Positions 35,005 through 62,300 of a DNA stretch of 64,000 nt are shown here, piece after piece (the stretch's first letter is position 1; each line of letters begins with the position of its first letter). The stretch covers positions 1 through 64,000 of the forward strand of contig JAHLWZ010000171.1 of the NCBI GenBank assembly GCA_020536535.1, in the 5' to 3' direction. The notes below the pieces were generated by a model. It ran no database searches. It was not told the origin of the DNA and was given only the letters and a program-made list of their open reading frames with translations. Source of the DNA: Pelomyxa schiedti (taxonomy: Eukaryota; Protista; Evosea). The position numbers were made by a program, and so were the translations under genes.

Positions 35005-37235
35005 ATGCAATCAGACGTCGCTGCCCCATCTGCGTCGCCGACGACGACCACGACACCCGAAGTGGCCCCGCAACAACCCCAAGATGCTGCCGCCCCACAA
35101 CCGCAACCAGAAGAGCAGCCGCAACAAACAACAACAACAACAACGGCAACAACAACAGGAGGACCAGGGGGCGAAATGCCCGAGATGACCCACACTAAGT
35201 TCAAGGTCGACACCGCTGCGGCGGAGGCGGCCAAGGCCGAGGGAAACGCGCTGTTCAACAAGGGCGACTACGAGCAGGCCATAAAGAAATACGACGCGGC
35301 TCTGGAGAGCAACCCCAGGGACTGGGCAACTTACAGGTCTTCTTTCAAAAGCATGTCTCATCGCACATCTCCCACCCCGGCAAAGCAAGCTGTCTCGTGA
35401 CCACACTCACCTCACGCCAATGCCCCCCCCCCAGTGCAATCCTAATTCTTAAAAATGGAAATAGCAACCGGTCATTGTGCCGCTTCCGGCAGGGGAATTA
35501 CCCGCAGGCAGTTGGCGACGCTCTCATGTGTGTCAGGCTCAACAAGAACTGGCCCAAGGGGTACTACCGCCTCGGCACCGCTTTGGCCGCCGTGGGGAAC
35601 CCAGTAAAGGCCCTGGATGCCTTCCAGGTGGGGCTCGTGGCTGCTCCTGATAATGCCGAGCTGCGGGAGGCTGCTGAGATGGTGCCGTTGTAGTACTACT
35701 CTCGCTCTCTTGTTGATGTCTTTGGCGCTTGCGCCTTGTGTACACTGCCAGTGTATTTGATGTGTTTTCGGTGTTACGGTGCGTGTAATATGTGGAAAGG
35801 TTGTTGACTAGTCAACATTTTGACCCTGTATCCCCTTCAGGCACGACAGGCAATAAAGAAATCTACTATTATAACCTGGCAGCCAATGCCTGCGGTGGGC
35901 CGCACGGGAGAACCACCAACAAGAAGATGTGCTCACAGTGCTTCAGTTATAGGACCTCGCATCTTTTGCTTTGGGGGCTTTGGAAATGGGGTACTGACCT
36001 GGTTTTCCTCCTCCGTTGAATTCATTTGTGGAATAGAAAGTCTTCAATAGCTTCACCGTCATAGACACCGAAACAAACTCCACGGAGGAGCTTCACAATC
36101 CCAGTTGGAAGATACCCGTTAGGGCCTCACATTCTGCAGTAGTATATGGATCATCTATCATTGTCTTTGGTGGCTATGATGGCTCCAGTACATTTTACAA
36201 CGGTTTGCATTTCTGTGTACCTTACACGCACTGATCCGACAATCAGATGTATGGCAATACGAGGTCCTCACCGGCACATGGACTGAATGGGCTACAAAAG
36301 GAACTAAGCCACATCCCCGGGGCAGCCACACTGCTTGTGTCTTTGGTCACAAAATGTTCATATTTGGCGGAATGGCTGGCCAAGAAGACGCTTCGACTGT
36401 GTGAGTATCCAAAGACAGAAGCTCACTTGCTCTCTTCTCTGCATTCGTTTCCCTAATCCGAACTTGAACAGGTTCTCCGATTTGCATGTTCTGAACTTGC
36501 GGACGCAGAAGTGGTCGCAGCCCACAGTAACCGGCAAATCACCTGATGCCAGGAACTCCCACGCAGCCACAATTGTGGGTAACAACATGGTAGTCATTGG
36601 CGGCTGCAACACCGCCTCAAAGTACTACAACGACGTCTGTAAGTAGTCCCTACCTCTTCTAGCATTTAGAATTTGGAATTTTGGCGTACCCAAACTCACC
36701 AACACTGAAAAATGCAGGGTTCCTCGACCTTGGAACGTTCAGATGGAACCAAGCAGGCATCTCCAACCCCGAAGCCTTCGAGCCCCGCATGGGCCTCACA
36801 ATCGCCTGCCTAGACTTCAAAATCTACGTGTACGGCGGCCTGGTCATCAAAGACAACTCCTACCGCAGTGAGATCTGGGTACTCGACACCCTCCCTACGC
36901 CGATCCCACAATCCGGAGCCGACCCATCGACGTCGTCACCAACAGCCGCGACCCCGACCGCGACCGCGACCGCCGCGGCACCAACTCCAATGCCAGCAAC
37001 AAACATGCCGGCGCAACTCACGTGGGAAGCCACTGTTCCCAGAGGCAGGATACTGGTCCCCAGGGTCGGCCACTCAATGAGCCTGGTGAGGGGATACAAG
37101 TTCGTCGTGCACGGCGGCGACGGCGGCCCAGAGCACGGCATCATGCAAGACCTGCACGTCGCGTTCGTGGATCTCGCCGTGCAGCACCTGTTGTCCCCCG
37201 ACTTGGCCGAAGCCACCAAACCGTCTCGAGACTGA
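35005..37235 (+). CDS. TPR + Kelch-repeat protein
   Basis: AKAEGNALFNKGDYEQAIKKY, SNRSLC, WPKGYYRLG (TPR); RCAHSASVIG.RIFCFGG, RNSHAATIVGNNMVVIGG (Kelch). Confidence 0.85.
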
Positions 37236-38798: not shown

Positions 38799-41700
38799 AT
38801 GAGCCGGACAATGTGGACGTCGTCAGCCTGGCCACCCACCCCAACACAGTCCAGGAAGCAACCACCAGCAGCAGCCACCCCAACGCCCACGAGAGAGAGC
38901 AGCACCCCCGTTGTCCAACAAGGGGACGTGAGCTCCTCAGCGCCACAGTCCCCGGCGCGGCCCCCCCATACTCCCAGTCTCTCGGTCAGCACAAGCGCGC
39001 CGCATGCCCCGGCGCGGCCCGCCCATACCCCCAGTCTCTCGGCCAGCAGCAGCGTCCCGCAGACCCCCGGGGGCACCGGCAGGGCCACCGCCGACACGGG
39101 ACCAGGCGGGGGCAACGAGAGGCGGCCGCCACAGAGGGGATCGCAGGGGCAGGGGGCGCGGGAGGAGGCGAGCTACGGGGTGTACCGCGGGGCGGGCTCG
39201 GGCGAGGGCGGGCGCGGCGACCCGGGCGCGGCCTCGTGGGGCGGCGCGTCGAGGGTGACGGCGAGCGACGTGGCGTGCAAGGCCTGCCTGAGGACGTTCT
39301 GTAGCCCCGTGTTTTTGGGCTGCGGCGACACTCTGTGCAGAGAATGCGTTCGCGTTCTCGTGGTGAAGAAATTGCTGACAGAGGGATTCTTTTGGAGCCG
39401 CCCTCCAAGCTCCTCCTTATCGAATATTCCCAGTCCTGGTTCTGCTTCGAGTCCTTCTGTGCCCCCTCCGTGCCCCCAAAACCAAAGTAGATCACCTAGA
39501 CTGGTGGAGATCAAGGTGTGTTTTTGCTTTGTTTCCAGCCCCACTGAAGATTGTCGTTAACTTGTGAAAAGTGTCCTGCCTGCTTGAAGCTAGTTCCTGT
39601 GCTGACAGATGTGGCAGAGCGTGGGACAAACCCATTAAACCTGCAAGACGACACTACTGCTATGAAGTTTATTACTGGCAATAAAAGGGTAAGCGGGGGT
39701 ATCCTATGAGTAAGATTGAAATTTTCTGCAGGTAGAACCTCAGTCATCAGGTACAAGCGGGAAAAAAACCAGTCTCGTGTTTCTCCTTTACTGATCTTTT
39801 TAGTAAAGGGTGAAGCTTTGGCTACAGAAATCAAGTCCAAGATCCTTCCTCTTGTAGCTGCTCTACTCAGCCAAATTGCCTCCCAAAAAAAGAAACTCAA
39901 GCAAACGGTCTTTCTGAAGGATTTGTATTTTGTTCTGAGAGAAGTACCAAATAGAAAGACGACACACTTAACGAGGAAATAAAACGCATGACAAAGAAAT
40001 TTGACGAACACAACCGGAGAATTGAAACCTTTGCTCAAGAACATAGGAGGACCATGGGTAACTCTCTTAACGAATATGTTTTCCTTCATTTCTTTCTATA
40101 GCGGAGAAACTTGATCAAAGAAAAAGGGCACTTCAGGCTTCAATAAACATTCACAAAAGCCTCTTTAGTGCAAGTCCAAAAGACCCTGTTCTCCAAGTAC
40201 AACGGCACTTCAGAATTTTAAATACACTTCGGGTACTTTTATCACGTTTTCCCCAGCTTATTGATAAAAGGGATTCTCTAGTCCAGAATCCAAATCACAC
40301 TTCAGGCGCAGCCAACTGGAAATCCGGGATGGTTATGAAATGTATACCCTTAAATAAAAAGAGAATATTCACTCATATTGTACTTGCTCTAGGGAGTTCG
40401 AACTTCAATCTTTACCCAAATGCCGCTACAGTGGTCCTAACAACTCGCAAATTGCAATCACTCTTAACTGGCAATTGAAGAAGGAAATACCTTCCAATTT
40501 CAATGTCAAGTTGAAATGGATGCGGGACACAGAGGAATTGAGTAACTGGGAAGTAGTAAAGGCTTTATGCATCAAATCACCAGAAAAAAATGGCTTCACT
40601 GCGGAACCTGTTGCAGTACTATGTAAATTTTCGGCAACAACCAATCCGCAGGCAAACAAGATCGACTTACAAATTACTCCGTACTGGGAAGAAAGTGATT
40701 ATAAGGGCAGAACAAAAGTATTTATGGGAGAACTGTGTTTTCAAAAGCTAGTACCGCTACCAGAACGTAAGTAACTGCAGCTACTTTTTTTTGGACTTAA
40801 GTCACTGAAGGAGCTCCTAGTGTCAGCCTATTTCCACGGAGCCCTTCATTACTTGCTCCTCCTAGTTCTGTAGCTCTTGAGAGAAACAGTGACACATTAT
40901 CAGTCATATTTTCCGATCCTGCTAATCACTGTATACGACGAATGAAGCAACAAGGGGGCGGCCTATCAATTCTAGAATTTGTAGTGGGGAAGCGGACACA
41001 GGAAGGATACAAGAACGGGTCAATAGACGAAGCCGAATTCCGACAACCTCATGGTGTTGCTATCGATAGCAGTGGGAACCTAATCGTTGCAGATACATAC
41101 AACAACTGCATAAGAAAGGTTGACTTTGGCACAGGTTAGCTTCAAACCCGAAATTTGAGCCTCTCCAAGATAAATCAAAAAAAAATATAGGGAGGGTTAC
41201 CACACTAGCAGGGTCTCCAGATCCTGGATTCACAAACGGGAAACGGCTTCAAGCACATTTCAAGGCGCCTTCCGGAGTTGCTTTCGATTCAAAGGGCGAT
41301 CTTCTTGTTGCTGACCGCGGAAACAATGCCATAAGAAAAATTGACCTCCGCAGTACTGCTTGTATGCGGTTAATTCTCGTCGTATAATCGTGCTCTTCGC
41401 AGGAGATATTGTATCGACCTTCATTGGACCAGAGGGCTCTTTTGCAGTTGTTGATAAACTAGTGGATCCCAGTTCAATCTGCGTAACCCCAGATAATGAC
41501 ATCGCCTTTGTCACCCATTCGAATAAATTAAGCATGGTCACTCAAGGTGTGGTTTTCTTCAAGCAAAGCTCAATTAGCATAACAAAAAAACCCTAATCTA
41601 ATGTAGGTGGGATCAAAACCCTGTACAGTTCCAAAGCCAAATGGGGACGAATTTCCGCCGTGGTACTCGACGCCTCCGCGCAGAACATCATCTTATGCGA

Positions 41701-41989
41701 AAAGAACCGCATTCTGTCGTGCGAAGTAGAACCCCTGACGACTAAGGGAGGAGGATCGGCCGTTGAGATTCACGTTCTTGCCGGCGACGTGGCTAAATAC
41801 GGCAGCCGCGACGGGGCGCCGGCTGAAGAGGCCCTGTTCACCAACATTGTGGGACTGGCGCTGGACCAATGGGGTGATGACCTGTACTTGGGAGACAAAT
41901 CTGAGAGTCCCACAATCAGGGTGGTGCACGGCATAAAGGCACTACTTTCATCTTTCAAAGTAAAACCAAAAACACCAGCACATGAATAA
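38799..41989 (+). CDS. RING + coiled-coil + NHL-repeat protein (TRIM-NHL-like E3 ligase)
   Basis: CKAC..PVFLGCGDTLCREC..CPAC; FRQPHGVAIDSSGNLIVADTYNNCIRKV; FKAPSGVAFD. Confidence 0.75.
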
Positions 41990-42081
41990 ACCCAATAAGA
42001 TAACAACTATTTTGTACCTGTAAACCACAGAATTAATTTTTTTTCTACCTCTTGAAGATTTTGTTTTTGGTTTAAAGAAGG

Positions 42082-42237
42082 AAGGAGTTGCGATAAACGC
42101 AAACTCCACTCACAAAAATTACACTGCTGGGCTCCCTTGCGGGATCCATATCGGGTCTCTGACCTGAGTGCTAAGTCAGAAGCCACGACAGCACACCAGT
42201 CCTTTTTGATCAACGGTGTGCACAGTCAGGTATGTAT
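42082..42237 (-). ncRNA. U1: Variant U1 snRNA (5' AUACAUACCUG)
   Basis: Minus strand: AUACAUACCUG; helix H ACUGU/GCAGU; SL1 loop GAUCAAAAAG; SL2 loop AGCACUC; SL3 with GCAA loop; Sm site AAUUUUUG; terminal SL4; about 156 nt; ACCCATAA at -62. Confidence 0.88.
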
Positions 42238-42291
42238 GAATCGAATTACTGTTTCCCCAGCGCAGAAACTTCCCGGAGGGTCCTGGGACAG

Positions 42292-42314
42292 TTATGGGTC
42301 ACAGCAACCCATAA
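42292..42314. promoter_or_regulatory. Bidirectional snRNA promoter: two inverted ACCCATAA (DUSE-like) elements
   Basis: TTATGGGT at 42292-42299 and ACCCATAA at 42307-42314, lying 62 and 63 nt upstream of the two U1 starts; fits the Dictyostelium upstream sequence element in consensus and spacing. Confidence 0.8.
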
Positions 42315-42369
42315 TCGTCAGGCGAAACACCGTACCCTTGTTTCGCAGTTACTTGAGATCTCCAATCTC

Positions 42370-42531
42370 ATACTTACCTGGTACTCACAGGCACTGATCA
42401 ATAAGGGTGTCTTGTGTATCAACATCTTTTCTCTTGCACTCTGGGCAGAGGTGTTGGTATGAGTCTCCGCAAGGGGATATCTAGTACACCATTTTTGAGA
42501 AGCCGAGGTCTGCGAAATTCGCAACCTCGCT
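42370..42531 (+). ncRNA. U1: U1 spliceosomal snRNA (canonical 5' end)
   Basis: AUACUUACCUGG; helix H GUACU/AGUAC; SL1 loop GAUCAAUAAG; SL2 loop UUGCACU; SL3 GCAA loop; Sm site AUUUUUG at 42491-42497; SL4; about 162 nt. Confidence 0.93.
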
Positions 42532-42686
42532 ACAGTAAAAAAACAGAAAAAGACAGGTCTTTGTGCTTGGAACCTGGAGTTGTAGAGTTGGCTTGAGCTT
42601 TGTGCAAAAAAAAAACTGGAAAAAAAAAGGAAGCTGAAAGTGTTGACATTTTCACATTAACAGTACAAAGGCATAAAATATTGTTT

Positions 42687-45078
42687 TTAATGTCGTTGAT
42701 AAAGGGCTCTAAATTTGGTTTTCTATAAGGAAATTAGAAAGGGTGACGCCAAGAGTTTTTACAAACTGCTTGTGCGAGCCACATGTGTCCTAAAGTGGCC
42801 TTTGCATCAGGTCTTTTACTTAACGGTACCAGTAAGCCCAAGGTGAACTGCGTTGCTTTTTGGCGTTTCATTTAGGGTGCTTTAATATTTGGAGAATACC
42901 TGCTGGTGATCTAAAACCCTTGGGTGGTTGCCTGATGTGTAATGCCTGTACATTTCTGTTTATATCATCCACTGTTATTCCCTCAAAAGGTTCCGCCCGG
43001 AACAACCTGTGGCGAGAAATTAACATAAAACAAGTTTGTAGGCAGCCATACAGATTGTATGTAATAACACCAAGCGCCCAGATGTCCGCCTTTAAATCAT
43101 ATTGTCCAACTAACACCTCTGGTGCTAAAACACATTAGAATAAATTGATGACAAAGAGGTGGGTACCCATGTAACCAGGGGTACCACATAAAGTTGTAAG
43201 CCACTCGTATTGAAGAATCTTGGACATTTCAAAGTCCTACATTGCAAATTACATTGGTTCCTCTAAGTGTGGGTGGAAACCGCAATTTTTACTCTCCTGT
43301 AGTCTGGGCACAGAAGGACGTTAGCCGGCTGCAATAAGTGAGAATGAGGATGTAATGGGGGGGAGGAAGTAACGTAGGACCTTCATATCCCTGTATTTGT
43401 TTTTAAAATGCGGGTTAGGGTGAAGAGTTTATGCATCGAGCTTGTAAGAAACCTGTGGGCAATAGCACGAGAGTGCAAGAATGAAAGCCCTGCGACTAAT
43501 TGAAATACTATCTCGGCAACAACATCTTCCTCTATGTAATTATTCATATGAATGAAGCTGTGAAGATCACCCCCAGCACAGCTGCAAGTAGTAATTAAGA
43601 ATGCTTCAAGGTTGAAATAACTCACTATTCTGTTATTAAACAAATTGCGTCAGGTTTCCATCCTACATCCAGTAGCTCTAGTAAATTTCTGTGCTTCTTT
43701 CCTTCGGCAGGTGATACAACACTTTGAAGTGATGAAGATGATATCTTGATAATTTTGGCCACAAATGTTTGCTTGTTGTGCGTGACTTTGTAAACAGAAC
43801 TACAGCTGGTAGATCTATTGTAGGAAAATGGACATAAGAAAAAAAAAAGACTAAAAAAGAAGGGACAGCACTGTGCGGGTGATAAACAGTCATAGTTGAC
43901 GTTGGCGTAGTACTCTTTATTATTAACACATATCCGTAGGATGCCACTTGGTTCCGCTGTCTTGAGTGAGTAGAAGTTGTACAAGCATAATGTACCATGA
44001 ATTTCTAACGAGTTGCAAGTAGGTGTAGATACAGGGTGAATGCTACTAGGAGAAGGGAGAGGTGAAGTGTGGTGTGGCGACGGGGGCGAATCATTGTAGT
44101 GGTTTGTCTGAGTGACGGAGATATCTCTTCCCGTATTGATGTTATGTGACATTGGAGGAGTTCGTTGCACCAAGGTTGTCTGCTGGGGGATGTCGATTGT
44201 GTTTCCGGGAATAACACATTCCTCGAACAGCTTTTTCCCCCTTGCAGAATCAGTGTCCTCTTTCGCTACAAAATAGCCTCAGAACCGCTTAAGAAGGGGG
44301 AAAAAAAAAAAAAAACCAAACCTCCACTGTCACCGTGAGGAAGATAGCCCCGCGTTGCACAGGTCCCATTCAGCGCCACTGAAGGTCCCAAAATGCCACC
44401 AGGAGTAGGCCTGGAACCAATGCCAGTCACTACTTGGAGAGGCATGATATTGGTACTAATCACCGGGGGCGGCATGTTGGTAATGTTGGAAGACGCCGTT
44501 GGAGGCCTCGAGGACGTGCCCTGGTAAACCGTTCCGGGAATGTCCCTTGAGAAGTCAAACGTCGCGGACGAGAGCGCAGAGGCCAGCGACGGCGGGGGCA
44601 GGCGCGTGTTGGCCGACTTTGCGAGGTGGCGCGGCTGCGGATTATGGGTCGCCAGGCACGAGGAGGCAGGCGACGGGTACGGCGACTGCGACGGCGACGA
44701 CAAGGTAGGCCGCTCGCGAGGATACGGGCCGTGGCACACCGTCGACGCAATCGCCGTTGTAGGCAAGGACAACGACTCGGGGTAATACAAGTTCGGGTGC
44801 GCAGGAAACGCAGGCTCGGTAAGCGCAGTCATGGACGTGGACGTGGACGTCGACGTCGATGTGGATGGGAATGTGAATGCCGATGTGGTGGGTGTGGTTG
44901 GGAACGCGGACGTGGAAGTGGAAGTGGAAGAGGAAGTGGGTGGGCGAGATGAAGTGTGGTGGTGTGGGGGAGGGCCTCGGTTTCGAGCGTAGTTGTTGTT
45001 CGAATGCGGTAAAGCATTAGGGAATGGATCGAAGGGGAGCGCGTTTGGGTTCATCATGCCGCCACCGCCTCTATACAT
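42687..45078 (-). CDS. Ser/Thr kinase-domain protein (CAMK-like, atypical) with long low-complexity N-terminus and PAM2-like motif
   Basis: VAK; AHRDMKPANV; KIADFE; LCGTPGYMAPE; KADIWALGVI; N-terminal MNPNALPFDP; 3' end approximate. Confidence 0.8.
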
Positions 45079-45287
45079 CTATTGCGGTGCGCGTCCGTTG
45101 TTGATAAGTGTTCGAGTTACGGAGGTGACTTCTTTTTTTTTTTTGAGTTTTTTGGTTTTTTTGCCATTCCATGAAGCGCTTTTCGTCGGAGCAGATGAAC
45201 TTGAGTTTCTCATTCTACAAACAACGGGTTCGTCCGTCGGGTAGTTCTGGATAAAGGAAACACTTTCCAGGGGGTGCTTGTTTTTTT

Positions 45288-47056
45288 TTACTGGTTCTTG
45301 CATTCTGGGGGTGGTGCTGGTGCTCCTGGTGTTGAATCTGGCGTGGACCCAGTGGGCGCAGATGGGGAGAAAAGGGATTTTTCCTTGAGAGGTTTCCCGC
45401 GCCTTGCCTTTTTTTGAGTGAGAACCTGGGTACTACCAAGAGAAAGGAGAGAAACTCACGACTTGTGGGGCACATCTTGGCCTCTTGGATTTGGGTCCTC
45501 CATAGTGCCGAGGCATTGCCTTTTCCTCGTCCTCTTCGTCGCCCTCGCCCTCTTCGTCTTCCTCCTGCTCTTCGCCTTCGTCATCATCTTCCTCATCTTC
45601 GTCATCGTCATCACTGTCTCCTGGTGGGCCCTCTTCATCACTCGCAGTGCTTTCAGACACGACTTCGCCCAAATACCACTTCAGGGCATTGGGACATATA
45701 TCATCCTTGAACTGTATTCCGACTGTGTGCCTATTTAAGTCGAAAAAAAAGGCTTGGGGGAAGAAACCTTCTACATCCAGGCTTCGTTGTTCTTCTTCCT
45801 GCTCAGTGATTATCTATGAATGAAGGAAAGGAAATATGATCATTACCAGGGGCTCAGGATCACCTAGTAACGCTGGCAATGGTGTGAAGAACTCAAAGAA
45901 AGAGGGTCTTGGGGCTTTCATAATAGCAACCTTCCCCTTTGCTTTCTTCCTGGAGATAATTTAGAACGGAGAATTTCGGGCTTTAAAAAGGGAACCTCCG
46001 CGTCATGACAGTGAGGTCTTTCCCATCTTTCCAGTTAGGTTTTGCGCTACAGGACGTTACATCCTAACATTAAAAGTCGGACAACCTGTCTGCATGGTGG
46101 AATTGAGATTCTGGGTCCTCTGCAGATTCAAAAAAGAAATAGGACTTGAACAGTGCAGCATCAGTAAAGAATGGGTTTGGAGCAAAAGTGAAAGTTAATT
46201 TGAAACCGCACTGAAGTGTTTTAGGGAATGGAGAATTGGGAAGGAAAGGGATGCAAACCAGGTATCGCTCTTTGCCATCAATAATAGTAGGGTTTTCCTT
46301 TGGTAAATTCTCAACAGAAATATCTTGCAGGAAATCCAAGGCTTCTGGATCGTGAGGTGACAAGTGGGAAAGCTGGCACAGCGTCTCGTTGTGAAGAATA
46401 GCTTTCCGCCAAAACTGTGGTATGCCTTTACCTTTTTATTTCCAGTCACTTTGTGGTCCTTTTTTTTAAAAAAAAAAAAATACATGGGGCAGTGGGTGCA
46501 GAGGCATCAGCCACAAACCCGGCACATTGTTCTTCACTAGGTTCTTGATCTCCTTTCACAATTGCACCTCGCTGTAAGGGAAGGGAATTTTTCGGTAGAA
46601 AGCATTCTTGGTTACCTTATCAAAGAGTGGCTTGGCCAACAACTCATACTTATGTTCCAATTGCTCTTGTTCTTCCCGTAATTGCTTCATAAGTTTCGCA
46701 TGTTCGTCCTTCACAATTCTTTATAAGCTAGATGCCACGGATGTTGAAAAAAAAAAAAAAAACCTCATAAAATGCACCCACAAAATCGTTACCTGAATAG
46801 ACCGCAACGCGTGCAACCGTTTCCTTACATCGTTAGACAAGTTGTCGTCCAGAGGCTTCTTCGTCGCCGCAGCCGAAAGCGGGAACGCGGGCAGCACAAG
46901 CGAACCTGGGGCAGAAAACAGCGACGCTGTCGGCGGTGCTGCAGCAGCCGTCGTGGCGCTCGCCGCCGTGGCCACGGTGCTGGTCGCGGCTGAGGACGAC
47001 GAAGAAGAAGGCGTAGCCGGAACAGACGTGAAGAGACCTGATGGCTTGTGTGACAT
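45288..47056 (-). CDS. NAP1: Nucleosome assembly protein 1
   Basis: VRKRLHALRSIQ; LEHKYELLAKPLFDK; GFKLTFTFAPNPFFTD; PNWKDGKDLT; acidic tract; C-terminal PECKNQ* (like the CKQQ prenylation motif). Confidence 0.9.
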
Positions 47057-47176
47057 GCTGCTGCTTAAGGCCGATTTAATTAGACGGAAGGCAATTCCAC
47101 TTAGGGGCGGACAATAAAACTGTTGTTTATACAAAAACGTGTGGAACTGTCCAAAAAAAATCTGTTGGTGAAGTGA

Positions 47177-47380
47177 TGCTCAATACATGACGTGGAAGGT
47201 CACCATGCAGAGCACAAATCTACCGGTTTATGAATCTGCCACAGACATGACCCGTTTCCCGCGCATTTAGGGACCCGAACAAACGGCGCCCAGGCTATAA
47301 TCCCGCCACTTGCCAAAAACTGGGTCGCAGCTGAACCAACCTGAGCCATCCCGTGGTGCGGTAGACTTAAGGGCTGTGGT
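47177..47380 (-). ncRNA. Putative structured non-coding RNA of unknown family
   Basis: AACCCATAATC element at -62; extensive G-U-containing helices on the minus strand; 3' hairpin; downstream T8 tract at 47153-47160; intergenic. Confidence 0.6.
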
Positions 47381-47434
47381 ACCAATCACAGGTTTCTCTG
47401 CCGCATTCCGTCTTGCACTTCCCTGTCGTTTGGA

Positions 47435-47442
47435 TTATGGGT
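47435..47442 (-). promoter_or_regulatory. DUSE-like element ACCCATAA
   Basis: Shares the 11-mer AACCCATAATC with the canonical U1 promoter. Confidence 0.6.
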
Positions 47443-53354: not shown

Positions 53355-56300
53355 CTACAAGATGGAGCACCAGCAGGGGAGATGTGATTGTCTGAATTGT
53401 TGTGTCTGTGGTGACTTGGTCTCTGGTGTGCAACATTGTGTGTTTGTGTCTGAGGCATAACAACTATTTACTCTGAGGCTGTTGCGTTCTGCGGTGCTGA
53501 TTCCTGTTGTCTCTGCTGTTGCTGTTCTGTGCCTGAGTCCAGAGTGTTGCTGCTGTTCCACAGAAGCGAATGACGCCTCGGTGTCGTCGTCGTCATCAGC
53601 GAGAGCTGTGCTGGGCTCATCAGGGTTGTCGAAAGTAATGTGGGTCGCCGGAGGCACCCCAGGCGGCGACGGGGCGCCCGGGAAGTCCTTGAACTCCGCC
53701 TTGATCGAGCGCAGGATCTGCGCCGCGCGGAGAAGCTCGGCCATGCTGTGGTGCGAGTTCACGTTGGTGCGGACCCGCGCGGAACCGGGCGGGACCGACC
53801 CCCCGCGCGAAACTATGGGAGTCGCGAACAGCCCGTTGTCGAGCATCCGGCGGGAGAAGGCCACGCAGGTCTCGTCGTTGCCGATGAGGATGGGCACGAT
53901 CGGCGTGCTGGTGCCGAAGGTCACGAAGCCCGCGTCCTCGAGCGCCTTCTTCCACGCCGCGGCCTTGTCCTGTATCATCTTGACGCGCCAGGGCTCCTCG
54001 CGGATTATTCGGAGCCCGGTTCTGGCGATGTGGCACTGCATGTCTGAAATGCCGGTGCTGAAGACGTAGGGCCGGGAGTTGTACACCAGCCAGTCGATCC
54101 CGTCCTTTGGGCCACAGACGTAGCCGCCAAGAGAGCATATGGCCTTGCTGAGGGTCCCTGACTTCCAGTGAGCTGCACCGAACATGTTGAAGTGCTCTTC
54201 GATTCCGCGGCCTGTGGCCCCAAGTACTCCCATAGAGTGTGCTTCGTCAAGTACAAGCACGCAGTCGTACTTTCTGGCGAGATTGTCAAGTACCGGGAGG
54301 TTCGCTATGTGACCCTCCATGCTGAACACGGCATCAGTGACAATAACTTTTCCTGCGTTTTGGGGAGTATCTTGCAACAAAGACTCCAAATGTACATAAT
54401 CCATGTGTTTGAAAGGGACTATACTGGCACCTGAAAGTCTACACCCATCATTGATTGATGCGTGGTTGAGGGCATCACTGAAGATATAATCTCCAGATTG
54501 TGCAACAGCTGAGAGAAGCGTTAGATTAGCAGTAAAGCCCGAAGGGGTGATAAGGGCAGCTTCACAGTGACAAAATTCTGCTATTTCACGCTGCAACTCA
54601 GCTTGTTCAGGCAGGATTCCTGCCTGAAGGGCACTTCCGAGTGAGCTTATAAGTGGTTTATCTTGGCTTGCTTTAATCATTCGCGGGTCATTGAATAATC
54701 CATGGTAGTTATTAGATTGAAGCAGGAGAGCGGTTTTTAGCTCGCCCTTGGTGCCAGGTGCATTTCTGAAGGTAACTTTATTGTTTTTGCCGTAGTGATC
54801 GATATCGAGGTGATGCATAACAATTCCAGCGGATCGCATCTTATTGAGCTCGGTAATAAATGTAGAAATACGACGCTTTTGGGGTGCCGGCCACTCAGAT
54901 AACACTCGGCGGCGAATTGCGCCCGGTGCACTGAGTGCGCCCATAGGAGCAGTGGAAACGGAGGCAGAGCTGGTGGCGGGAGCGGGGGTGGAAGTTAGGG
55001 TTGCAGTAGAAATAGAGCTGGTGGGGGTGACTATGGCTGTTGAGGAAGGTTTTTTGGGATTTTCTGAAGAAGTTTCTGCAATTTTAGGGACTTCCGTGCT
55101 TGCTGCCTTCGCTACGGTATCTGGGGCCGCTGCCTTTGCGGTGACTGTGGACTGTGGTGGACTGTCAACTGAAGGAACTTCTCCCCTCAAAGTGGAAATT
55201 TCCGCAGCGAGCTCTGCAATGGTGATTCCACTGAGGAGTTTCAGTGGTGAAATGCTCACACCAAGTTCAGACATAATCCAAGTGCGTAGGCTGGTTGCCA
55301 CAAGACTGTCAATGCCCTGGGATGCAAGAACCATGTCTTCTCCTATAGTCTGTTCATCTATGCCAAGAGTCTTCGCCAGCCGAGCTTTCAATAGTGAGAA
55401 GACTGACGAATCACCAGAAACGGGCTTCTGGGTGGTTTCGTCCACAAAAGTATTTTCAGAGAAGCGAGCCAAATTTAGGGTTCCTTTATTACTTGGATAA
55501 AATGCATTCATATCTATCGAGAAAACGGAAACTGCAGAATCCGATTCCTTTCGAGAAAGAAGGGTATAGAGACAGGCGAGAGATTGCTTTGCTGGGACTT
55601 GATTAACGCCATCAGCAGCAAGAGTCATTGCCATCCAAGGAGATGTTGTCAAAACTCCTGTTTCTCCAATTGCTCCCCATTGAATGGATAAGGCAGGTAA
55701 CCCAAGGTAATGTCTGTACTGTACGAATTTATCCATAAAATAGTTACCAGCAACGTAGGGTGTTTGCCCTCCCCTTCCAAAGAGAGATGAAATTGACGAG
55801 AACATTACGAATTGCTTCACTGGGTGTGAGAGGGTAACTTTGTGTAAATTCCACGCGCCAAGAAGTTTTGGTAAGCAAACGCGAGAAAATTTCTCACTTG
55901 TAAGGTTATAGAGGGAGCAATCACCGTGAGTAGTAGCACAGTGATAAACACCTTCTATTCTCGGCATCTCACTCTCTACAACTTTAATTGCTGCCACAGC
56001 AGACTCATAGTTACAGACATCAAGAGATAAGCACAGAACTTTACAGCCATGGCGTTTTAGCCATTCAACTTCCTGAGCATCAGAAATTGTTTTCGGTTTA
56101 CCTTCACGGGAAGCTAGTACAATATTTTTTGCTCCGTGGTCATACAACCACTTTGCAGTTGCAAATCCAAATCCACTTAAACCACCAGAAATCAGGTATG
56201 AGGCATTAACATTGCATAACCAACTATGGCCACTGTGTAATGGATGAAGATCTTCTTTGGAAGGTGTGTTGAGAGTTACGGCTATTTTTCCGATATGATC

Positions 56301-59300
56301 TGGATTGCTAAACTGTTGCAAGGCATCTTGGATGTGTGAAGTGTCATACATTTTGACAGGCAAAACACCAGATAACTGGGATGCCAGTTTCAAGATTTCA
56401 GGGCCAAGTTCATAGAACACCTCTTTGTCTGGTATTCGAGATAATTCGACTATGTGGACAGATTGATTGTCAGAAAGTGTGTTGACTGGGAGTTGTTGTC
56501 CTGGGATGAGTTGAATAAACCTTCCATTACTGGCGAGCATTTGTACTGACTGTTCGGCTAGTGCTCCAGTATATGGATTCACTACTATATCTACACCTCT
56601 ACCGAAAGTAAGATCCATAACCTTTTGTGTCAGGCTAGGATCCTTTATCATAAAGACATTCTCCAAGCCTACAACCTGCTTGAGGTGATTCATCTTCGCT
56701 TCGGTGGAGGCAGTAGCTATCACTTGGAGACCGAGTGACCTAGCAAGATGAACAAACGCAAGTCCAACACCACCAGCTGCAGAATGAACCAAAATGAGCT
56801 CTCCTTTCCGTACCTTGGTGCAATGGAGCAGTGAATAAACAGCAGTCCACGATGGAATCATCACTACTGCGGCTTCTTCCGCCGAGAGAGTGGGTGGTTT
56901 TGGAAACACTGAATAGAAAGTTGATATCAAGTGGGAACAGAGGGTTCCCAGACGTGTCATAACAATAACCTCATCTCCAGGTTTGACATGTGTAACTGCA
57001 CTTCCAACACGCTTTACCACACCAGATCCCTCTAGACCAAGCTTGCCATATTTGTGCCAATGATCTGTTGCTCTTCCTACATCAAGCAATCCTTGAGAAA
57101 GAAGGAAGTCCTTGAAGTTGAGACCAGTGTATTTCATCTCTGTGCACACTTCAGTTGGGGCAAGTGCGCGACCAGCATCAAATTTCACAAATCTGATGTG
57201 CTTTGTTCCTTCATCAAGTTGCAACTCCCACCCTTCTTCTGTGACTGTTGGGACAGGTGGCAGTTCAAGGTGCTGAGCTTCGTCTTTCAAATCATAAAAA
57301 TTAACTCGTTCACAAAAGCGTTGATTCTTGTGAATACAAATTTCAGTCTCAACTGGAGCATTCCACCCAAAAAGTATCTCTGAAGAAATGTGAGCTGTAG
57401 ACTCTTGAATGTTAGCAGAAGGGTCAAGGTCTATCACCTTGACACACAGTGACGTTTCTGCACAAATCACACGTGCAACTCCCCAAACAGAAAATAAAGA
57501 CATTCCTGGGAAGTGACTCCTGGTTTGTTGGGGATCTTGAACGCCTTGGGTGATAACAACCACTCCGCATATTATATTAGCTTGGCCTAAAGCTGTGCAC
57601 ATATAGGCCAGATGGAGGGCACCGTCAAGTGAAGCTCTCTTCAGGTCTTCCTCAAGTGGTTCCTGTGTTGAATAGTAGGATGCGGGCCACAGGTCAATTA
57701 TGTGCTCAGTGGATTTTCCAACCGATTTAAACAGTTGAAGCCAATGCTCTTTGTTCAATGGATCTAGGGAGAGAACTGACCCAGTTTCTTCATATGTAGG
57801 ACCCGGCACAATCACAATAACTTCCCGATACTGTGGACGGAAGGAAGAAACAAGAGAGTGCGAAAGTGCACGGCAATTCTCACAAGATAGTACAAGGAGA
57901 GTTCCATTGTGTACTGTTGTTGCTGTGTCAAGGGGGATTTCCAGTGGTTTGGGAATCCATTTTTCAGTACCAAGAGAAATATTTGTTGCTTTATTGGTTA
58001 CACTGCTGAGGCATAGGTTTTTCACCGAAACCAGAGGTTTCCCTGTGATATCCATCAATATGGCATCTCCAACAAGTGATTTCTGAGGGACAAAGTCGCG
58101 GATCTTTGTGTGGCACCAGAAGGAAGAAAAGTTGCGTGCAGAAGACAGTGGTTTTTGTGCGAGAAAGGAGGCAAAGGCCAACTCTATTCCCTTTGACCCT
58201 CCATTATCAGAAACGACAGCAGAGAAGCCTGTCTTGTATAAACGTTGGGTCCATTCCTCTCTGCTTAGACAAACGTGATCCCTATCTTTTGGGTCGTTAG
58301 CCCACCATTGGTCAAAAAGACCAAACAGGAAGTTGAAGAAAACGGAGTCTTTTCTAGTTGGTTCTGTAAGAAGTAACACTCCCCCTGGGGAAAGGGCATC
58401 AAAAATTCTCGATAGCACAGGGCCCACTTCTGAAGCAACGTGGACGACAGCGAATGCTATGATTACATTTACCTCTCTAAGTTCGTCGGGGAAAGGTTTC
58501 GCAATATCAAGAGTACTACATTGCACAAAAGGTATATGCCCGAACATCTCTTTTGCACTGCTTACAAAGAAAGGTGAGACATCAGTAAAAATGTACTCCA
58601 CATCGCATCCATTTGTATAAGCTTCTTGGCAGAGTGGAAGGAATTGTTTTGTTGCTCCACCGGTACCACCACCAATTTCAAGAATTCTAATTCGCTTTCC
58701 GCACTGCAGTAATTTTCTCAATACCGGGAATGAGGTAGTATTAATGTTGCAGGTAACAGACTCAGAATAAAACTTGGAAAGTTTGTCATCCTCAAAGAGG
58801 GAGCCTGAATTGTTCAGAACGTGAACAACATTTTTTCCCACACTGTGGATGATTTCAGATTCTATGGTCATCACTTTGAAAGGGAACAAAGGTATATCAG
58901 GATTGGGCACAAAATCTGTAGAAATGCTCCTGTGCCAATTTATGTACTTCTGCTTACTTGGTGTCCAATTTGTGGTGCCTTCTACCGCTTTGCAAAAAAG
59001 AGCAGAATAATATTTACAGAGTAATATCAAATGAGGATTTTCTTGCAGAGCCATTACGAGTCTGTCTTCTTCAACTTTGTCATACTGTGGGGCAAAGTCA
59101 CCTTTTAATTCCACTTGAAAATCGAAATCCTTGCTTTGAATGGGACTTGGTTGAGAAAGTATTTCGAGCTCGCCCACAGATGCAGGAAGGAGGATATTGG
59201 AACCCCTAAGGTCAGGTACACTTAAGAGACCGCCGATAATGCACTGAAAGCAGCCGTCCAAAACAGTAGGATGAAGAGCGAAGTTTTCTGTAACTGACTC

Positions 59301-62300
59301 CAAAACACTGTGTCGAAAGGTCAGCTGACCCAGTGCTTCATTAAAGTTGGTATTGTTGATGAAAATTTTGGAAATTGGGGAAAATAGAGGCCCATAGTTG
59401 AGGCCCATTTCTGAAAATGCTTTGTAGACTGTTGAGTGTCCTTTTTGTAATTTGCATGCTGTCTTGAGGGCGGAAAGCTCGTCTGTTGACTCTTCAGATG
59501 GGGAACTGACTTCAATATTACATGAGGCACGCTTTGAAAGAGATTTCTCCGATTCAGCTTTAGTGTGAACTTCAAATCCCATGCGCTTTCCAGTTGGGTG
59601 ATAGTTTGTGACAATGCACTTGAACTCTACATAAGAGTCTGGGGATAAGATAACTGGGCTGTGAAAGACAAGATTTGCAACCCGAACTTGACTAGTCCTA
59701 AAGACTTCCCTTGCGGCAAGAGTGGCAAGTTCGGCGTAAAAAGCACCTGGGACTACAATGTCCTCTCCTGCACTGACCTTATGGTCAGATATCCAAGGGT
59801 ACAAGTTTAATGCAACAACGTTACTCCATGAGGGTATTGGGGAATCATCTCGCAGTCCCAACAAACTATGTGTTGCACTTAATCCCCGCCGGTATGTTGT
59901 GAAATGTTTTGGTTCGAAAATTTGAACTGTGTTTTGCCACACTGGCGAGTTAGGTACTTTTATCCACCTCATTTTGTCTTCTGGCTCGATACCAAGAAGC
60001 GGGTGCTTGGAAATATTGTCCCAGTTCAGATTTCCAATGCCGTTTACATAGAGAGTGGAAAGCGCTGATAAGATCACGTGGCGTTCAGGCTTGTTTCTCT
60101 CGATTGAATGCACAATAAAGGTAGGAGTTTTTGGCGTCGAGGCTGCAGTTGCTTCAAGGTATAGACTGAGAACAGGATGATTCGCCAGCTCTACAAACAC
60201 GTTGAATTTTTCCTCAAGAGCTGATAAAATCGCAGGGTAGAAAAGAACACTGCATCGAACATTTTTCCACCAGTAGTCTGGGCCTGGAGGATCGTGAAGG
60301 ACTTTTCCCAGGACAGTGGAGTACATAGGGATTTTTGGATGAGGAGCGGGGGCTAGAGTCTGTAACTCTTGAATTAATTGCTCTTTGATAGGCTCTGTTT
60401 GATAACTGTGGAAGGCATTTTGCACATGTAAAAATTTTGCAAACTGATCTTTTGCTTTCAGTGTTTTTTCAACAGATGCGAGTGCTGCAGGATCCCCTGC
60501 CAAAACAACAGAGTCAGCACTATTCACAGAAGCAATATCCACATTGGAAACACCAGTTATCAACTCTGCAGCTTTGGCTGCAGACATATTAATTGCCAGC
60601 ATTCTGCCCTTGCCACTTAAAGCCTGTTGTAGTCTAGATCTGACGCTGATTACAAGGACACCTTCCTCCAATGTCAAATAACCACAAGCAACAGCTGCAG
60701 CTACTTCGCCAACACTGTGACCAACCACAGCATCAGGAACTATCCCCCAGTGTCGCCAGAGGGAATTCAGGCCAATTTGAACAGCAAAGATCAATACTTG
60801 TGCAAACTGAGTCTGATTGACGCGTGACTCTGCTTCAGTTTTGTGCAGCTCTTCCACTACTGACCATCCCATCACCCTTTTGCCAATGACGTCAACTTTA
60901 GAAAGTGCATCATGAAAAATTGCGTCCTCAGCATACAGCTGCCTCCCCATAGCATACCATTGTGGTCCCTGGCCAGAAAACACAAATAAAACCTTGTTAT
61001 TTCTCTTCAGAAATTGAGCTGTGCCTGATTTCCAACCATCCTCTTGCGCTTTTGGATTTTGGATGAAACTTTCCAGGGATTGGCACATTTCAGAAGGATT
61101 TCTTCCAAGTACAACAAGACGTTGTGAGTAGTGATTTGATCGTTTCCCAGCAGAGTAAATAATATCTGATAAGGAAGCTTTGCTTGTAGAAAGAAAACTG
61201 TGCCACTTTTTTGCACATCCACTTAGAGCTGTGCTTGTGTGTGCGGATATCGGTAAACAATAAATCGGTTTTTCTCCAGGGATACTCTCCTCGGAGAAAG
61301 TGGGTGATGGTGGTGTCTGTAATGGTGGGATGTACTCCTCTATAACTGCAGTGGCATTGCTGCCACCAAAGCCAAATGAATTAACAACAGCTATCTTTCT
61401 TTTGGTCACTTTGCTCCACTGTTCTCCTTTCCAGGGGATTGCAAGGCTTCCAAGATTGAAATGGGGATCCAGTGGCACTAATCTTTGCGGGAATATTTCA
61501 TTATGCTGATTTTTGTTTTTGTTGGTTTAGTGAACAAAAAAGTCTAGGAGATTTCGGGAACCTGAATCATGAGAAGAACTTTTGTAAGACTTGCTAACCC
61601 TGCTGCTGCTTCAGTGTGTCCAATATTCGATTTGACTGATCCTATGAAACAGGGACCTCTGGTGCCAACAGCGTCTTCACTAAACACGCTCCTGAGAGTG
61701 TCAACCTCGATGGGATCACCTACTGGTGTTCCTGTGCCATGGGCTTCGATATATGTTACGTCTCTGGGATCAACATGGGCAACTTTGAGAGCCTGCTGCA
61801 AGACAGTTATTTGCCCCGTTGATGATGGGCGATTAATAAACTGCTTGCTACCGTCATGGTTATTGGCAGTGCCTGCTATGACACAATAAATATGGTCGCC
61901 ATTTGCCACAGCATCGGAGAGAGGCTTTTGGTGAAGTTGGTAAGGTTTTATTTATTTTGACTTATAATGGCGCTTCTTTTTCTCTACACTGTTTTAAATG
62001 CAGTATATAATTCTAAGTTTTGTGTTGTGTTGCGCTGCTTTTGAATTGCAGGGTGTATTAAAGTGTTTATGTTTAGGGACGCACTTTCAATAAGAAAGCC
62101 GAGCCACCTTCAGCCCTGACATATCCATCAGCGTTGGAGCCAAAAGTGTTGCACCTGCCAGAGGAAGTTGTCATTCCGGCCCTGGAGACTGCCAGAGAGA
62201 ACTGGGGCAGCAGAAGCTGGTTCGAAGCAGCCACCAAGGCCGAGGAGCACTCGCCCGCCCGCATGCTGCTGTACGCCAGGTGCAGCGCCACCAGGGAGCC

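Follow-up and report, generated by a model that had tools for sequence, protein, structure and literature searches.

A dispersed head-to-head module of U1 snRNA genes with two types of 5' arm in the genome of Pelomyxa schiedti

Modified U1 arms in Amoebozoa and elsewhere

The 5' arm of U1 snRNA with the sequence ACUUAC belongs to the most conserved RNA sequences of eukaryotes. The sequence-only reading of the locus described here had taken it as nearly invariant, which does not hold for Amoebozoa, since exceptions are found in Physarum polycephalum, Mastigamoeba balamuthi and Entamoeba (bioRxiv 10.1101/2022.06.08.495308). According to this preprint, a U1 with the arm ACAUAC coexists with a standard U1 in Physarum. 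A U1 candidate with the arm ACGUAC is reported for Mastigamoeba, and the U1 arm of Entamoeba, ACAAAC, is complementary to the local donors (bioRxiv 10.1101/2022.06.08.495308). U1 is unchanged in yeasts, Giardia, Trichomonas, Micromonas and Thecamonas (bioRxiv 10.1101/2022.06.08.495308).

The window analysed here, a stretch of 64,000 nucleotides from Pelomyxa schiedti, contains a canonical U1 gene and, head to head with it, a U1 gene with the arm ACAUAC. Going by the preprint, both organisms share the U-to-A change at arm nucleotide 5, which gives Watson-Crick pairing with GUAUGU, and both hold a standard and a modified U1 in one amoebozoan genome. In contrast, Pelomyxa belongs to another amoebozoan lineage, and its donors are weak everywhere, whereas the preprint gives GUAUGU as the commonest donor of Physarum. 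A fixed head-to-head module, a third class or co-duplication is not described for Physarum in bioRxiv 10.1101/2022.06.08.495308. Like Mastigamoeba, which is also an archamoeba, P. schiedti has U1 genes whose nucleotide 5 is G and would match C at intron position +4; the same arm is found on contigs C804 and C919. However, it belongs to the single clear candidate in Mastigamoeba, whereas the Pelomyxa genes form a minority class (G5) beside the classes with U (U5) and A (A5) at this position. Entamoeba resembles Pelomyxa in that a U1 arm has co-evolved with an atypical donor (GUUUGU in Entamoeba) within the Archamoebae. Unlike Pelomyxa, it has two arm changes in a single gene that replaces the canonical arm, few introns and a strict donor consensus. 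The variant U1 genes of P. schiedti combine what characterizes the amoebozoan variants, namely an intact body, a substitution at an arm position pairing with +3/+4 and complementarity to a frequent donor. Changed U1 arms themselves are already known from related amoebae. New from the genome-wide comparison are the three coexisting deep classes, the co-duplicating U5/A5 promoter module and the class-fixed arm nucleotide.

Variant U1 genes are also known from animals (human vU1 and developmental variants of frog, sea urchin and insects). Most of these multi-copy genes, some of which have changed 5' arms, are recent, expressed at low levels or restricted to certain stages. Pelomyxa differs by its deep classes, saturated flanks and class-fixed arm nucleotides. 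Zhuang and Weiner reportedly found in 1986 that a mutated donor is used again once the U1 arm carries a compensatory change. Such engineered suppressor U1s provide the mechanistic basis for a switch of +4 specificity through nucleotide 5, but they are artificial and do not represent a natural standing set of readers. Regarding snRNA promoters, a Dictyostelium study describes the DUSE, a C-rich box located some 60 nt ahead of small-RNA genes of both the Pol II and the Pol III type, whose conservation outside dictyostelids is not expected (PMC7919456, citing Hinas et al.). In the literature we found no paper on Pelomyxa snRNAs, and the published P. schiedti assembly paper never mentions snRNAs.

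The U1 gene pair and its putative promoter

In a cmscan search of the 64-kb window against Rfam 15, U1 (RF00003, gathering cut-off 69.5 bits) was the only family above its gathering score. The two matches lie on opposite strands and both span model positions 1-166 (Table 1). Hence, the opposite-strand pair with starts 132 bp apart, as noticed from the sequence alone, is real. The plus copy is identical to the donor-complementary arm AUACUUACCUG, with U as nucleotide 5 at window position 42374. The arm of the minus copy, AUACAUACCUG, departs from it at nucleotide 5 alone (A for U, window position 42233). In helix H, GUACU pairs with AGUAC in the plus copy, and ACUGU with GCAGU in the minus copy. 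Both copies possess a GAUCA...AAGG loop in stem-loop 1, a GCAA loop in stem-loop 3, the Sm site AUUUUUG between stem-loop 3/helix H and the last hairpin, and the terminal hairpin; these elements, all claimed earlier, are seen in the sequence as well as in the Rfam alignment. The folding of each copy beats 200/200 dinucleotide shuffles (z -3.8 and -3.9). In the A5 copy, the loop of stem-loop 2 reads UAGCAC, one change from the AUUGCAC type. This alteration of the U1A loop had been noted as a property of the variant and is indeed present, but since only 2/10 A5 copies and 1/2 G5 copies have it, it is no class character.

An assembly error at the variant arm had also been considered. An independent contig of a DNA run matches positions 42124-42303 with zero differences and thereby confirms the ACATAC arm. 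Another, low-depth contig of a DNA run joins 42137 to 42221 within the A5 gene and skips 83 nt (TG..TG), probably because paralogous U1 copies were collapsed when this run was assembled. The contigs of two RNA runs leave 42161-42554 uncovered, so that neither U1 is covered. Since these libraries carry ends of the template-switch/oligo-dT adapter type, this gap is uninformative rather than negative.

Table 1. Positions of the two U1 genes and their putative promoter elements in the window
Feature	Position	Strand	Remarks
A5-class U1 snRNA gene	42082..42237	-	RF00003, 73.9 bits, E 2e-16, full length
A5 U1 Sm site AAUUUUUG	42113..42120	-	seen in the sequence; A-UUU run invariant across copies
A5 U1 stem-loop 1 loop GAUCAAAAAGG, U1-70K type	42201..42211	-	GAUCA and AGG invariant in 21/21 aligned copies
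A5 U1 arm reading the 5' splice site, nucleotides 1-11	42227..42237	-	invariant in 10/10 A5 copies
Spacer, putative bidirectional snRNA promoter	42238..42369		132 bp; two back-to-back CCCATAA and two GCG boxes
Putative proximal GCG box of A5 gene	42260..42264	-	about -27
DUSE-like box CCCATAA of A5 gene	42292..42298	-	at -61
DUSE-like box CCCATAA of U5 gene	42308..42314	+	at -62
Putative proximal GCG box (UCGCA) of U5 gene	42343..42347	+	about -26
Canonical U5-class U1 snRNA gene	42370..42531	+	RF00003, 71.5 bits, E 9.9e-16, full length
Canonical U1 stem-loop 1 loop GAUCAAUAAGG	42396..42406	+	seen in the sequence and alignment
Canonical U1 Sm site AUUUUUG	42491..42497	+	seen in the sequence and alignment

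The mirror-image boxes of the spacer recur in front of other snRNA genes of P. schiedti. CCCAYAA is found at -59 to -64 in 21/25 U1 copies, and all intact U1 genes of every class have either this box or a form shorter by one C (CCAYAA) near -61. It also precedes 36/36 examined copies of U2, U5 and U6 snRNA genes at -58 to -66 (one U6 at -53). A second box, GCG/CGA, lies between -34 and -21 in 23/23 U1, 12/12 U2 and 12/12 U5 snRNA genes, but in only 2/12 U6 genes, against a background of 0.36. Near -27 it thus marks the Pol II-type snRNA genes (47/47) and not U6. Each of the ten intact A5 copies carries CCCAYAA or CCAYAA near -61 together with the GCG box near -27. Within the window, 37 CCCAYAA boxes are observed where 20.9 are expected. 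We liken CCCAYAA to the DUSE, on the basis of the consensus sequence that we take the latter to have. The position near -61 and the occurrence before U1, U2, U5 and U6 agree with the DUSE. In contrast, the Pelomyxa boxes are fused back to back, and a GCG box at -27 is added on Pol II-type genes.

In addition, the starts of U1 and U2 come after YTC. A further CCCATAA box (47441-47435, minus strand) lies about 60 nt ahead of a stretch of about 220 nt that ends in a T run. This region (47153-47442) may represent another small-RNA gene with the same type of promoter; it is without an Rfam match (the best E value, 0.12, was obtained elsewhere in the region), and its fold is no better than that of shuffles (z -0.63). 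A scan for promoters and terminators of the bacterial type was irrelevant to these genes and was set aside.

U1 classes and the history of the module

The Rfam model was searched on both strands of the whole P. schiedti assembly (52,367,397 bases in 5337 contigs), a check proposed along with the initial observation, and yielded 25 U1 matches. They fall into three deep classes, set apart at arm nucleotide 5. The canonical U5 class comprises eight intact copies with the helix H sequence GGUAC, the A5 class ten intact copies with GACUG, and the G5 class the two solitary copies with the arm ACGUAC, which share helix H with the A5 class. In the intact copies nucleotide 5 is fixed by class (8/8 U, 10/10 A, 2/2 G). 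In a maximum-likelihood tree (FastTree) the U5 and G5 clades have local supports of 0.975 and 0.998. Within the arm that pairs with the splice site, nucleotide 5 is the only fixed difference between U5 and A5. The remaining fixed differences concern helix H with its 3' flank or one compensated pair of stem-loop 1. A fourth class with C at this position was not found in a genome search with an arm-plus-loop pattern; an arm match on contig C1614 was rejected, as it is not a U1.

The bodies of these genes have changed considerably while their structure has been retained. In 21 aligned copies, standard pairs make up 94.3% of the cells in 28 consensus pairs, compared to 70.3% after shuffling, and 0/500 shuffles reach the observed value. 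Both sides have changed in 22 of the 28 pairs, and the covariation score is 0.748 versus at most 0.256 with partners slid. The four-way junction (helix H and stem-loops 1-3) and the 3' hairpin are supported by covariation, and GCAC in the loop of stem-loop 2 is invariant in 21/21 copies. In the A5 class alone, pairing is kept through two-sided changes in 17 of 42 predicted pairs, and the terminal hairpin is recovered from an alignment of this class only. Mean identity among the ten intact A5 copies is about 75%, yet nucleotides 1-11 are the same in all of them. Only 38% of the alignment columns are invariant overall, and a naive estimate from this fraction gives a probability of 6e-6 for the invariance of the A5 arm. 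That the variant is an old, selected U1 paralogue, as had been proposed from the window, is well supported by A5-specific covariation, the invariant arm and the promoter boxes.

Intact head-to-head modules of a U5 and an A5 gene are present on seven unlinked contigs (C171, which holds the window, C716, C290, C448, C455, C966 and C1082), with 132-152 bp between the two genes. An eighth module, on C22, has a degenerate U-type partner, and degenerate versions occur on C918 and C1151. Homology between the modules is limited to the 450-520 bp of the module itself, and the flanks are non-homologous. Since homology ends at the module edges, the modules represent distinct loci rather than alleles. The distance matrix of the U5 genes correlates with that of their A5 partners (Mantel r 0.74; only 2/5040 permutations are as high), and the tree contains parallel sub-clades in both classes; therefore, the module was copied as a unit. 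Judged by these comparisons, the head-to-head pair represents a dispersed, co-duplicated module at no fewer than eight (at least 8) unlinked loci.

The module copies have now diverged by 7-33%. Between modules, mean identity is 76% and 81% for the two genes and 54% for the spacer, which outside the boxes is barely conserved above the level of shuffled sequence (48%). Hence, the duplications are old, and purifying selection acts on both genes. U1 copies are 71-75% identical within a class, compared to 99% for U6, 96% for U2 and 90% for U5 snRNA. On the evidence of these identities, U1 alone escapes concerted evolution in the P. schiedti genome.

Several copies show signs of decay. The U-type partner on C22 (L023, C22:72485-72641, minus strand) combines a U-type body (helix H GUAC) with A as nucleotide 5 and U as nucleotide 11. 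It scores 53.9 bits, below the Rfam cut-off, and its stem-loop 3 is damaged; the A5 gene paired with it is normal. Either this copy has decayed, or U changed to A independently for a second time. Beside its ten intact copies, the A5 class includes three copies of 139 nt without stem-loop 3. Such copies are located on C1151 (L021, L022) and C918 (L024, L025). They have A at nucleotide 11 and are about 95% identical to one another, and the spacer of the C918 pair measures 43 bp and is without a promoter box. From their sequences, the C918 and C1151 loci are probably dead or dying modules.

No module like that of Pelomyxa was found in a metagenome scan for A5 arms. The scan returned contig Ga0114972_10029052 (L087), which carries U1, U2 and histone 3' stem-loops in a tandem cluster of animal-like type; the complete U1 of this cluster scores 152 bits, and its arm is ACAUAC. 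It also returned four contigs Ga02099xx (L084, L086, L095 and L096) with an identical U1 of 72.6 bits and the same arm. The latter are GC-rich (54-59%) eukaryotic DNA, unlike Pelomyxa; hence, the A5 arm arose elsewhere, too.

Donor sites and possible roles of the U1 classes

The published single-cell assembly of P. schiedti has 52.4 Mb, 5337 scaffolds and 7.43 introns per gene, and 149,016 introns with RNA support are annotated in it. In the surroundings of the module (40232-45459), contigs of two RNA runs support 13 introns, all of the type GT..AG and 38-60 nt long, most often 44 nt. Their donors are very weak and degenerate at +3 to +6. Position +4 is U in six, A in four, C in three and G in none of them, and the best-pairing arm is that of A5 for six, U5 for four and G5 for three donors. 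A larger set was predicted by a gene finder to which GT was the only donor signal given, with strand competition, a maximum intron length of 80 nt and codon usage trained on joined exons. It found 215 introns versus 3 in decoys for the window, and 327 unique introns versus 4 in reversed-sequence decoys for the window and the fetched loci together. The predicted introns peak at 41-45 nt. The introns of this genome are extremely small. Among the 327 predictions, +4 is U in.37, A in.27, C in.21 and G in.16, shares that are diluted towards background, since the finder places the donor correctly in only about 8/13 known cases. Despite the small RNA-supported sample and the noise of the predictions, +4U is the commonest donor class in both sets; the comparison of A with U at +4, which had been suggested as a genome-wide check, hence favours U in these sets. 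Two other intron finders were discarded: one based on ORF continuity was powerless, as a decoy dinucleotide pair outscored GT..AG in hits, and a second drifted into over-prediction during unrestrained self-training. An uninterrupted ORF of 2707 codons (53355-61478, minus strand) lies amid the otherwise intron-dense region.

The sequence-only reading had listed GTATGT and GTAAGT donors in the window and had proposed a dual-U1 system for degenerate donors. The hexamers are present; the GUAAGU at 40767 is RNA-supported, and three of the five GUAUGU sites as well as the GUAAGU at 36639 were called by the donor-blind finder. GUAUGU as a dominant donor could not be upheld, as the donors are weak at every position. 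The degenerate donors of the proposal stood, with U, A or C at +4, but there are at least three U1 classes (U5, A5 and G5) instead of two.

We therefore propose, with a probability of roughly two thirds, that both genes of the window are genuine U1 genes in an ancient bidirectional module and that the U1 classes together cover the degenerate donors. The back-to-back CCCAYAA boxes, each some 61 nt ahead of the gene it serves and followed by GCG near -27, would drive both genes. One strand would yield canonical U1 (ACUUAC) and the other the A5 paralogue (ACAUAC). As the protein-binding loops are shared by all classes, each of them presumably assembles with the same proteins into a U1 snRNP. Nucleotide 5 would pair with intron position +4. 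Canonical U1 would fit +4A and form a wobble pair with +4G, A5 would fit +4U, and G5 would fit +4C with a wobble pair to +4U. In this way the three classes could jointly cover the degenerate donors of a very intron-dense genome with tiny introns. The ACAGAGA box is invariant among the U6 copies. The A5 U1 probably helps in recognizing the unusually sloppy intron starts of P. schiedti, and a working division of labour among several U1s is plausible from the sequence comparisons.

A stricter form of this proposal is that +4 of each intron selects the cognate U1 (U5 for +4A/G, A5 for +4U, G5 for +4C/U), that the promoter module matches the dosage of the partners and that this system allowed donors to decay to little more than GU. 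We put this forward only tentatively and consider it rather less probable than its opposite. As to the main proposal that the U1 classes together cover the donors, the contribution of pairing at +4 may be small, because no donor position is strongly conserved. There are only two G5 copies although +4C accounts for about 20% of the donors (3/13 RNA-supported, 0.21 of the predictions), which also counts against this coverage. A matching U1 is not required, either, as yeast, Giardia and Trichomonas splice +4U donors by means of a canonical U1 (bioRxiv 10.1101/2022.06.08.495308).

Three observations, namely donors degenerate at +3 to +6, splicing of +4U with canonical U1 in these organisms and uniform protein-binding loops, would also be expected if all classes were functional but interchangeable old paralogues. 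In that case nucleotide 5 would be of minor importance, and donors would be read via GU, U1C-type proteins and later contacts of U6 and U5. We regard this as unlikely. Nucleotide 5 has remained fixed in each class while the bodies diverged by 25-30%, whereas a neutral site would have mixed, and the sole exception is the degenerate copy on C22, which lies below the Rfam cut-off. It is less likely still that A5 and G5 are stage- or condition-specific isoforms or serve outside splicing, for instance in the suppression of premature cleavage and polyadenylation. U1 variants that are switched during development are known from animals. However, the U5 and A5 genes share a compact putative bidirectional promoter with mirror-image boxes, which argues for their co-expression, and within the arm they differ consistently in the donor-reading nucleotide alone. 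Finally, the assembly stems from amplified single cells and some copies are clearly degenerate (C918, C1151 and the partner on C22), but a pseudogene, an assembly or sequencing error, an allelic haplotype or contaminant DNA is a very improbable source of the variant in view of ten intact A5 loci with non-homologous flanks, within-class covariation, an invariant arm and intact promoter boxes, the arm in an independent DNA contig, and a position only 132 bp away from a canonical U1 and amid genes with RNA-supported tiny introns.

Under the proposed coverage of degenerate donors by several U1 classes, the separate cases of Physarum, Mastigamoeba and Entamoeba join into an amoebozoan pattern. Why donors drift without U1 following is an open question in intron evolution. 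Three deep, selected classes which differ in the arm only at the nucleotide reading +4, two of them in a co-duplicating module, would constitute a natural experiment in a free-living amoeba rich in introns. The system could show whether introns are divided among U1 snRNPs by pairing at a single position. For the annotation of archamoebal genomes, the promoter signature of CCCAYAA at -61 and GCG at -27 may be of use, and donor models with a single consensus will presumably fit these genomes poorly.
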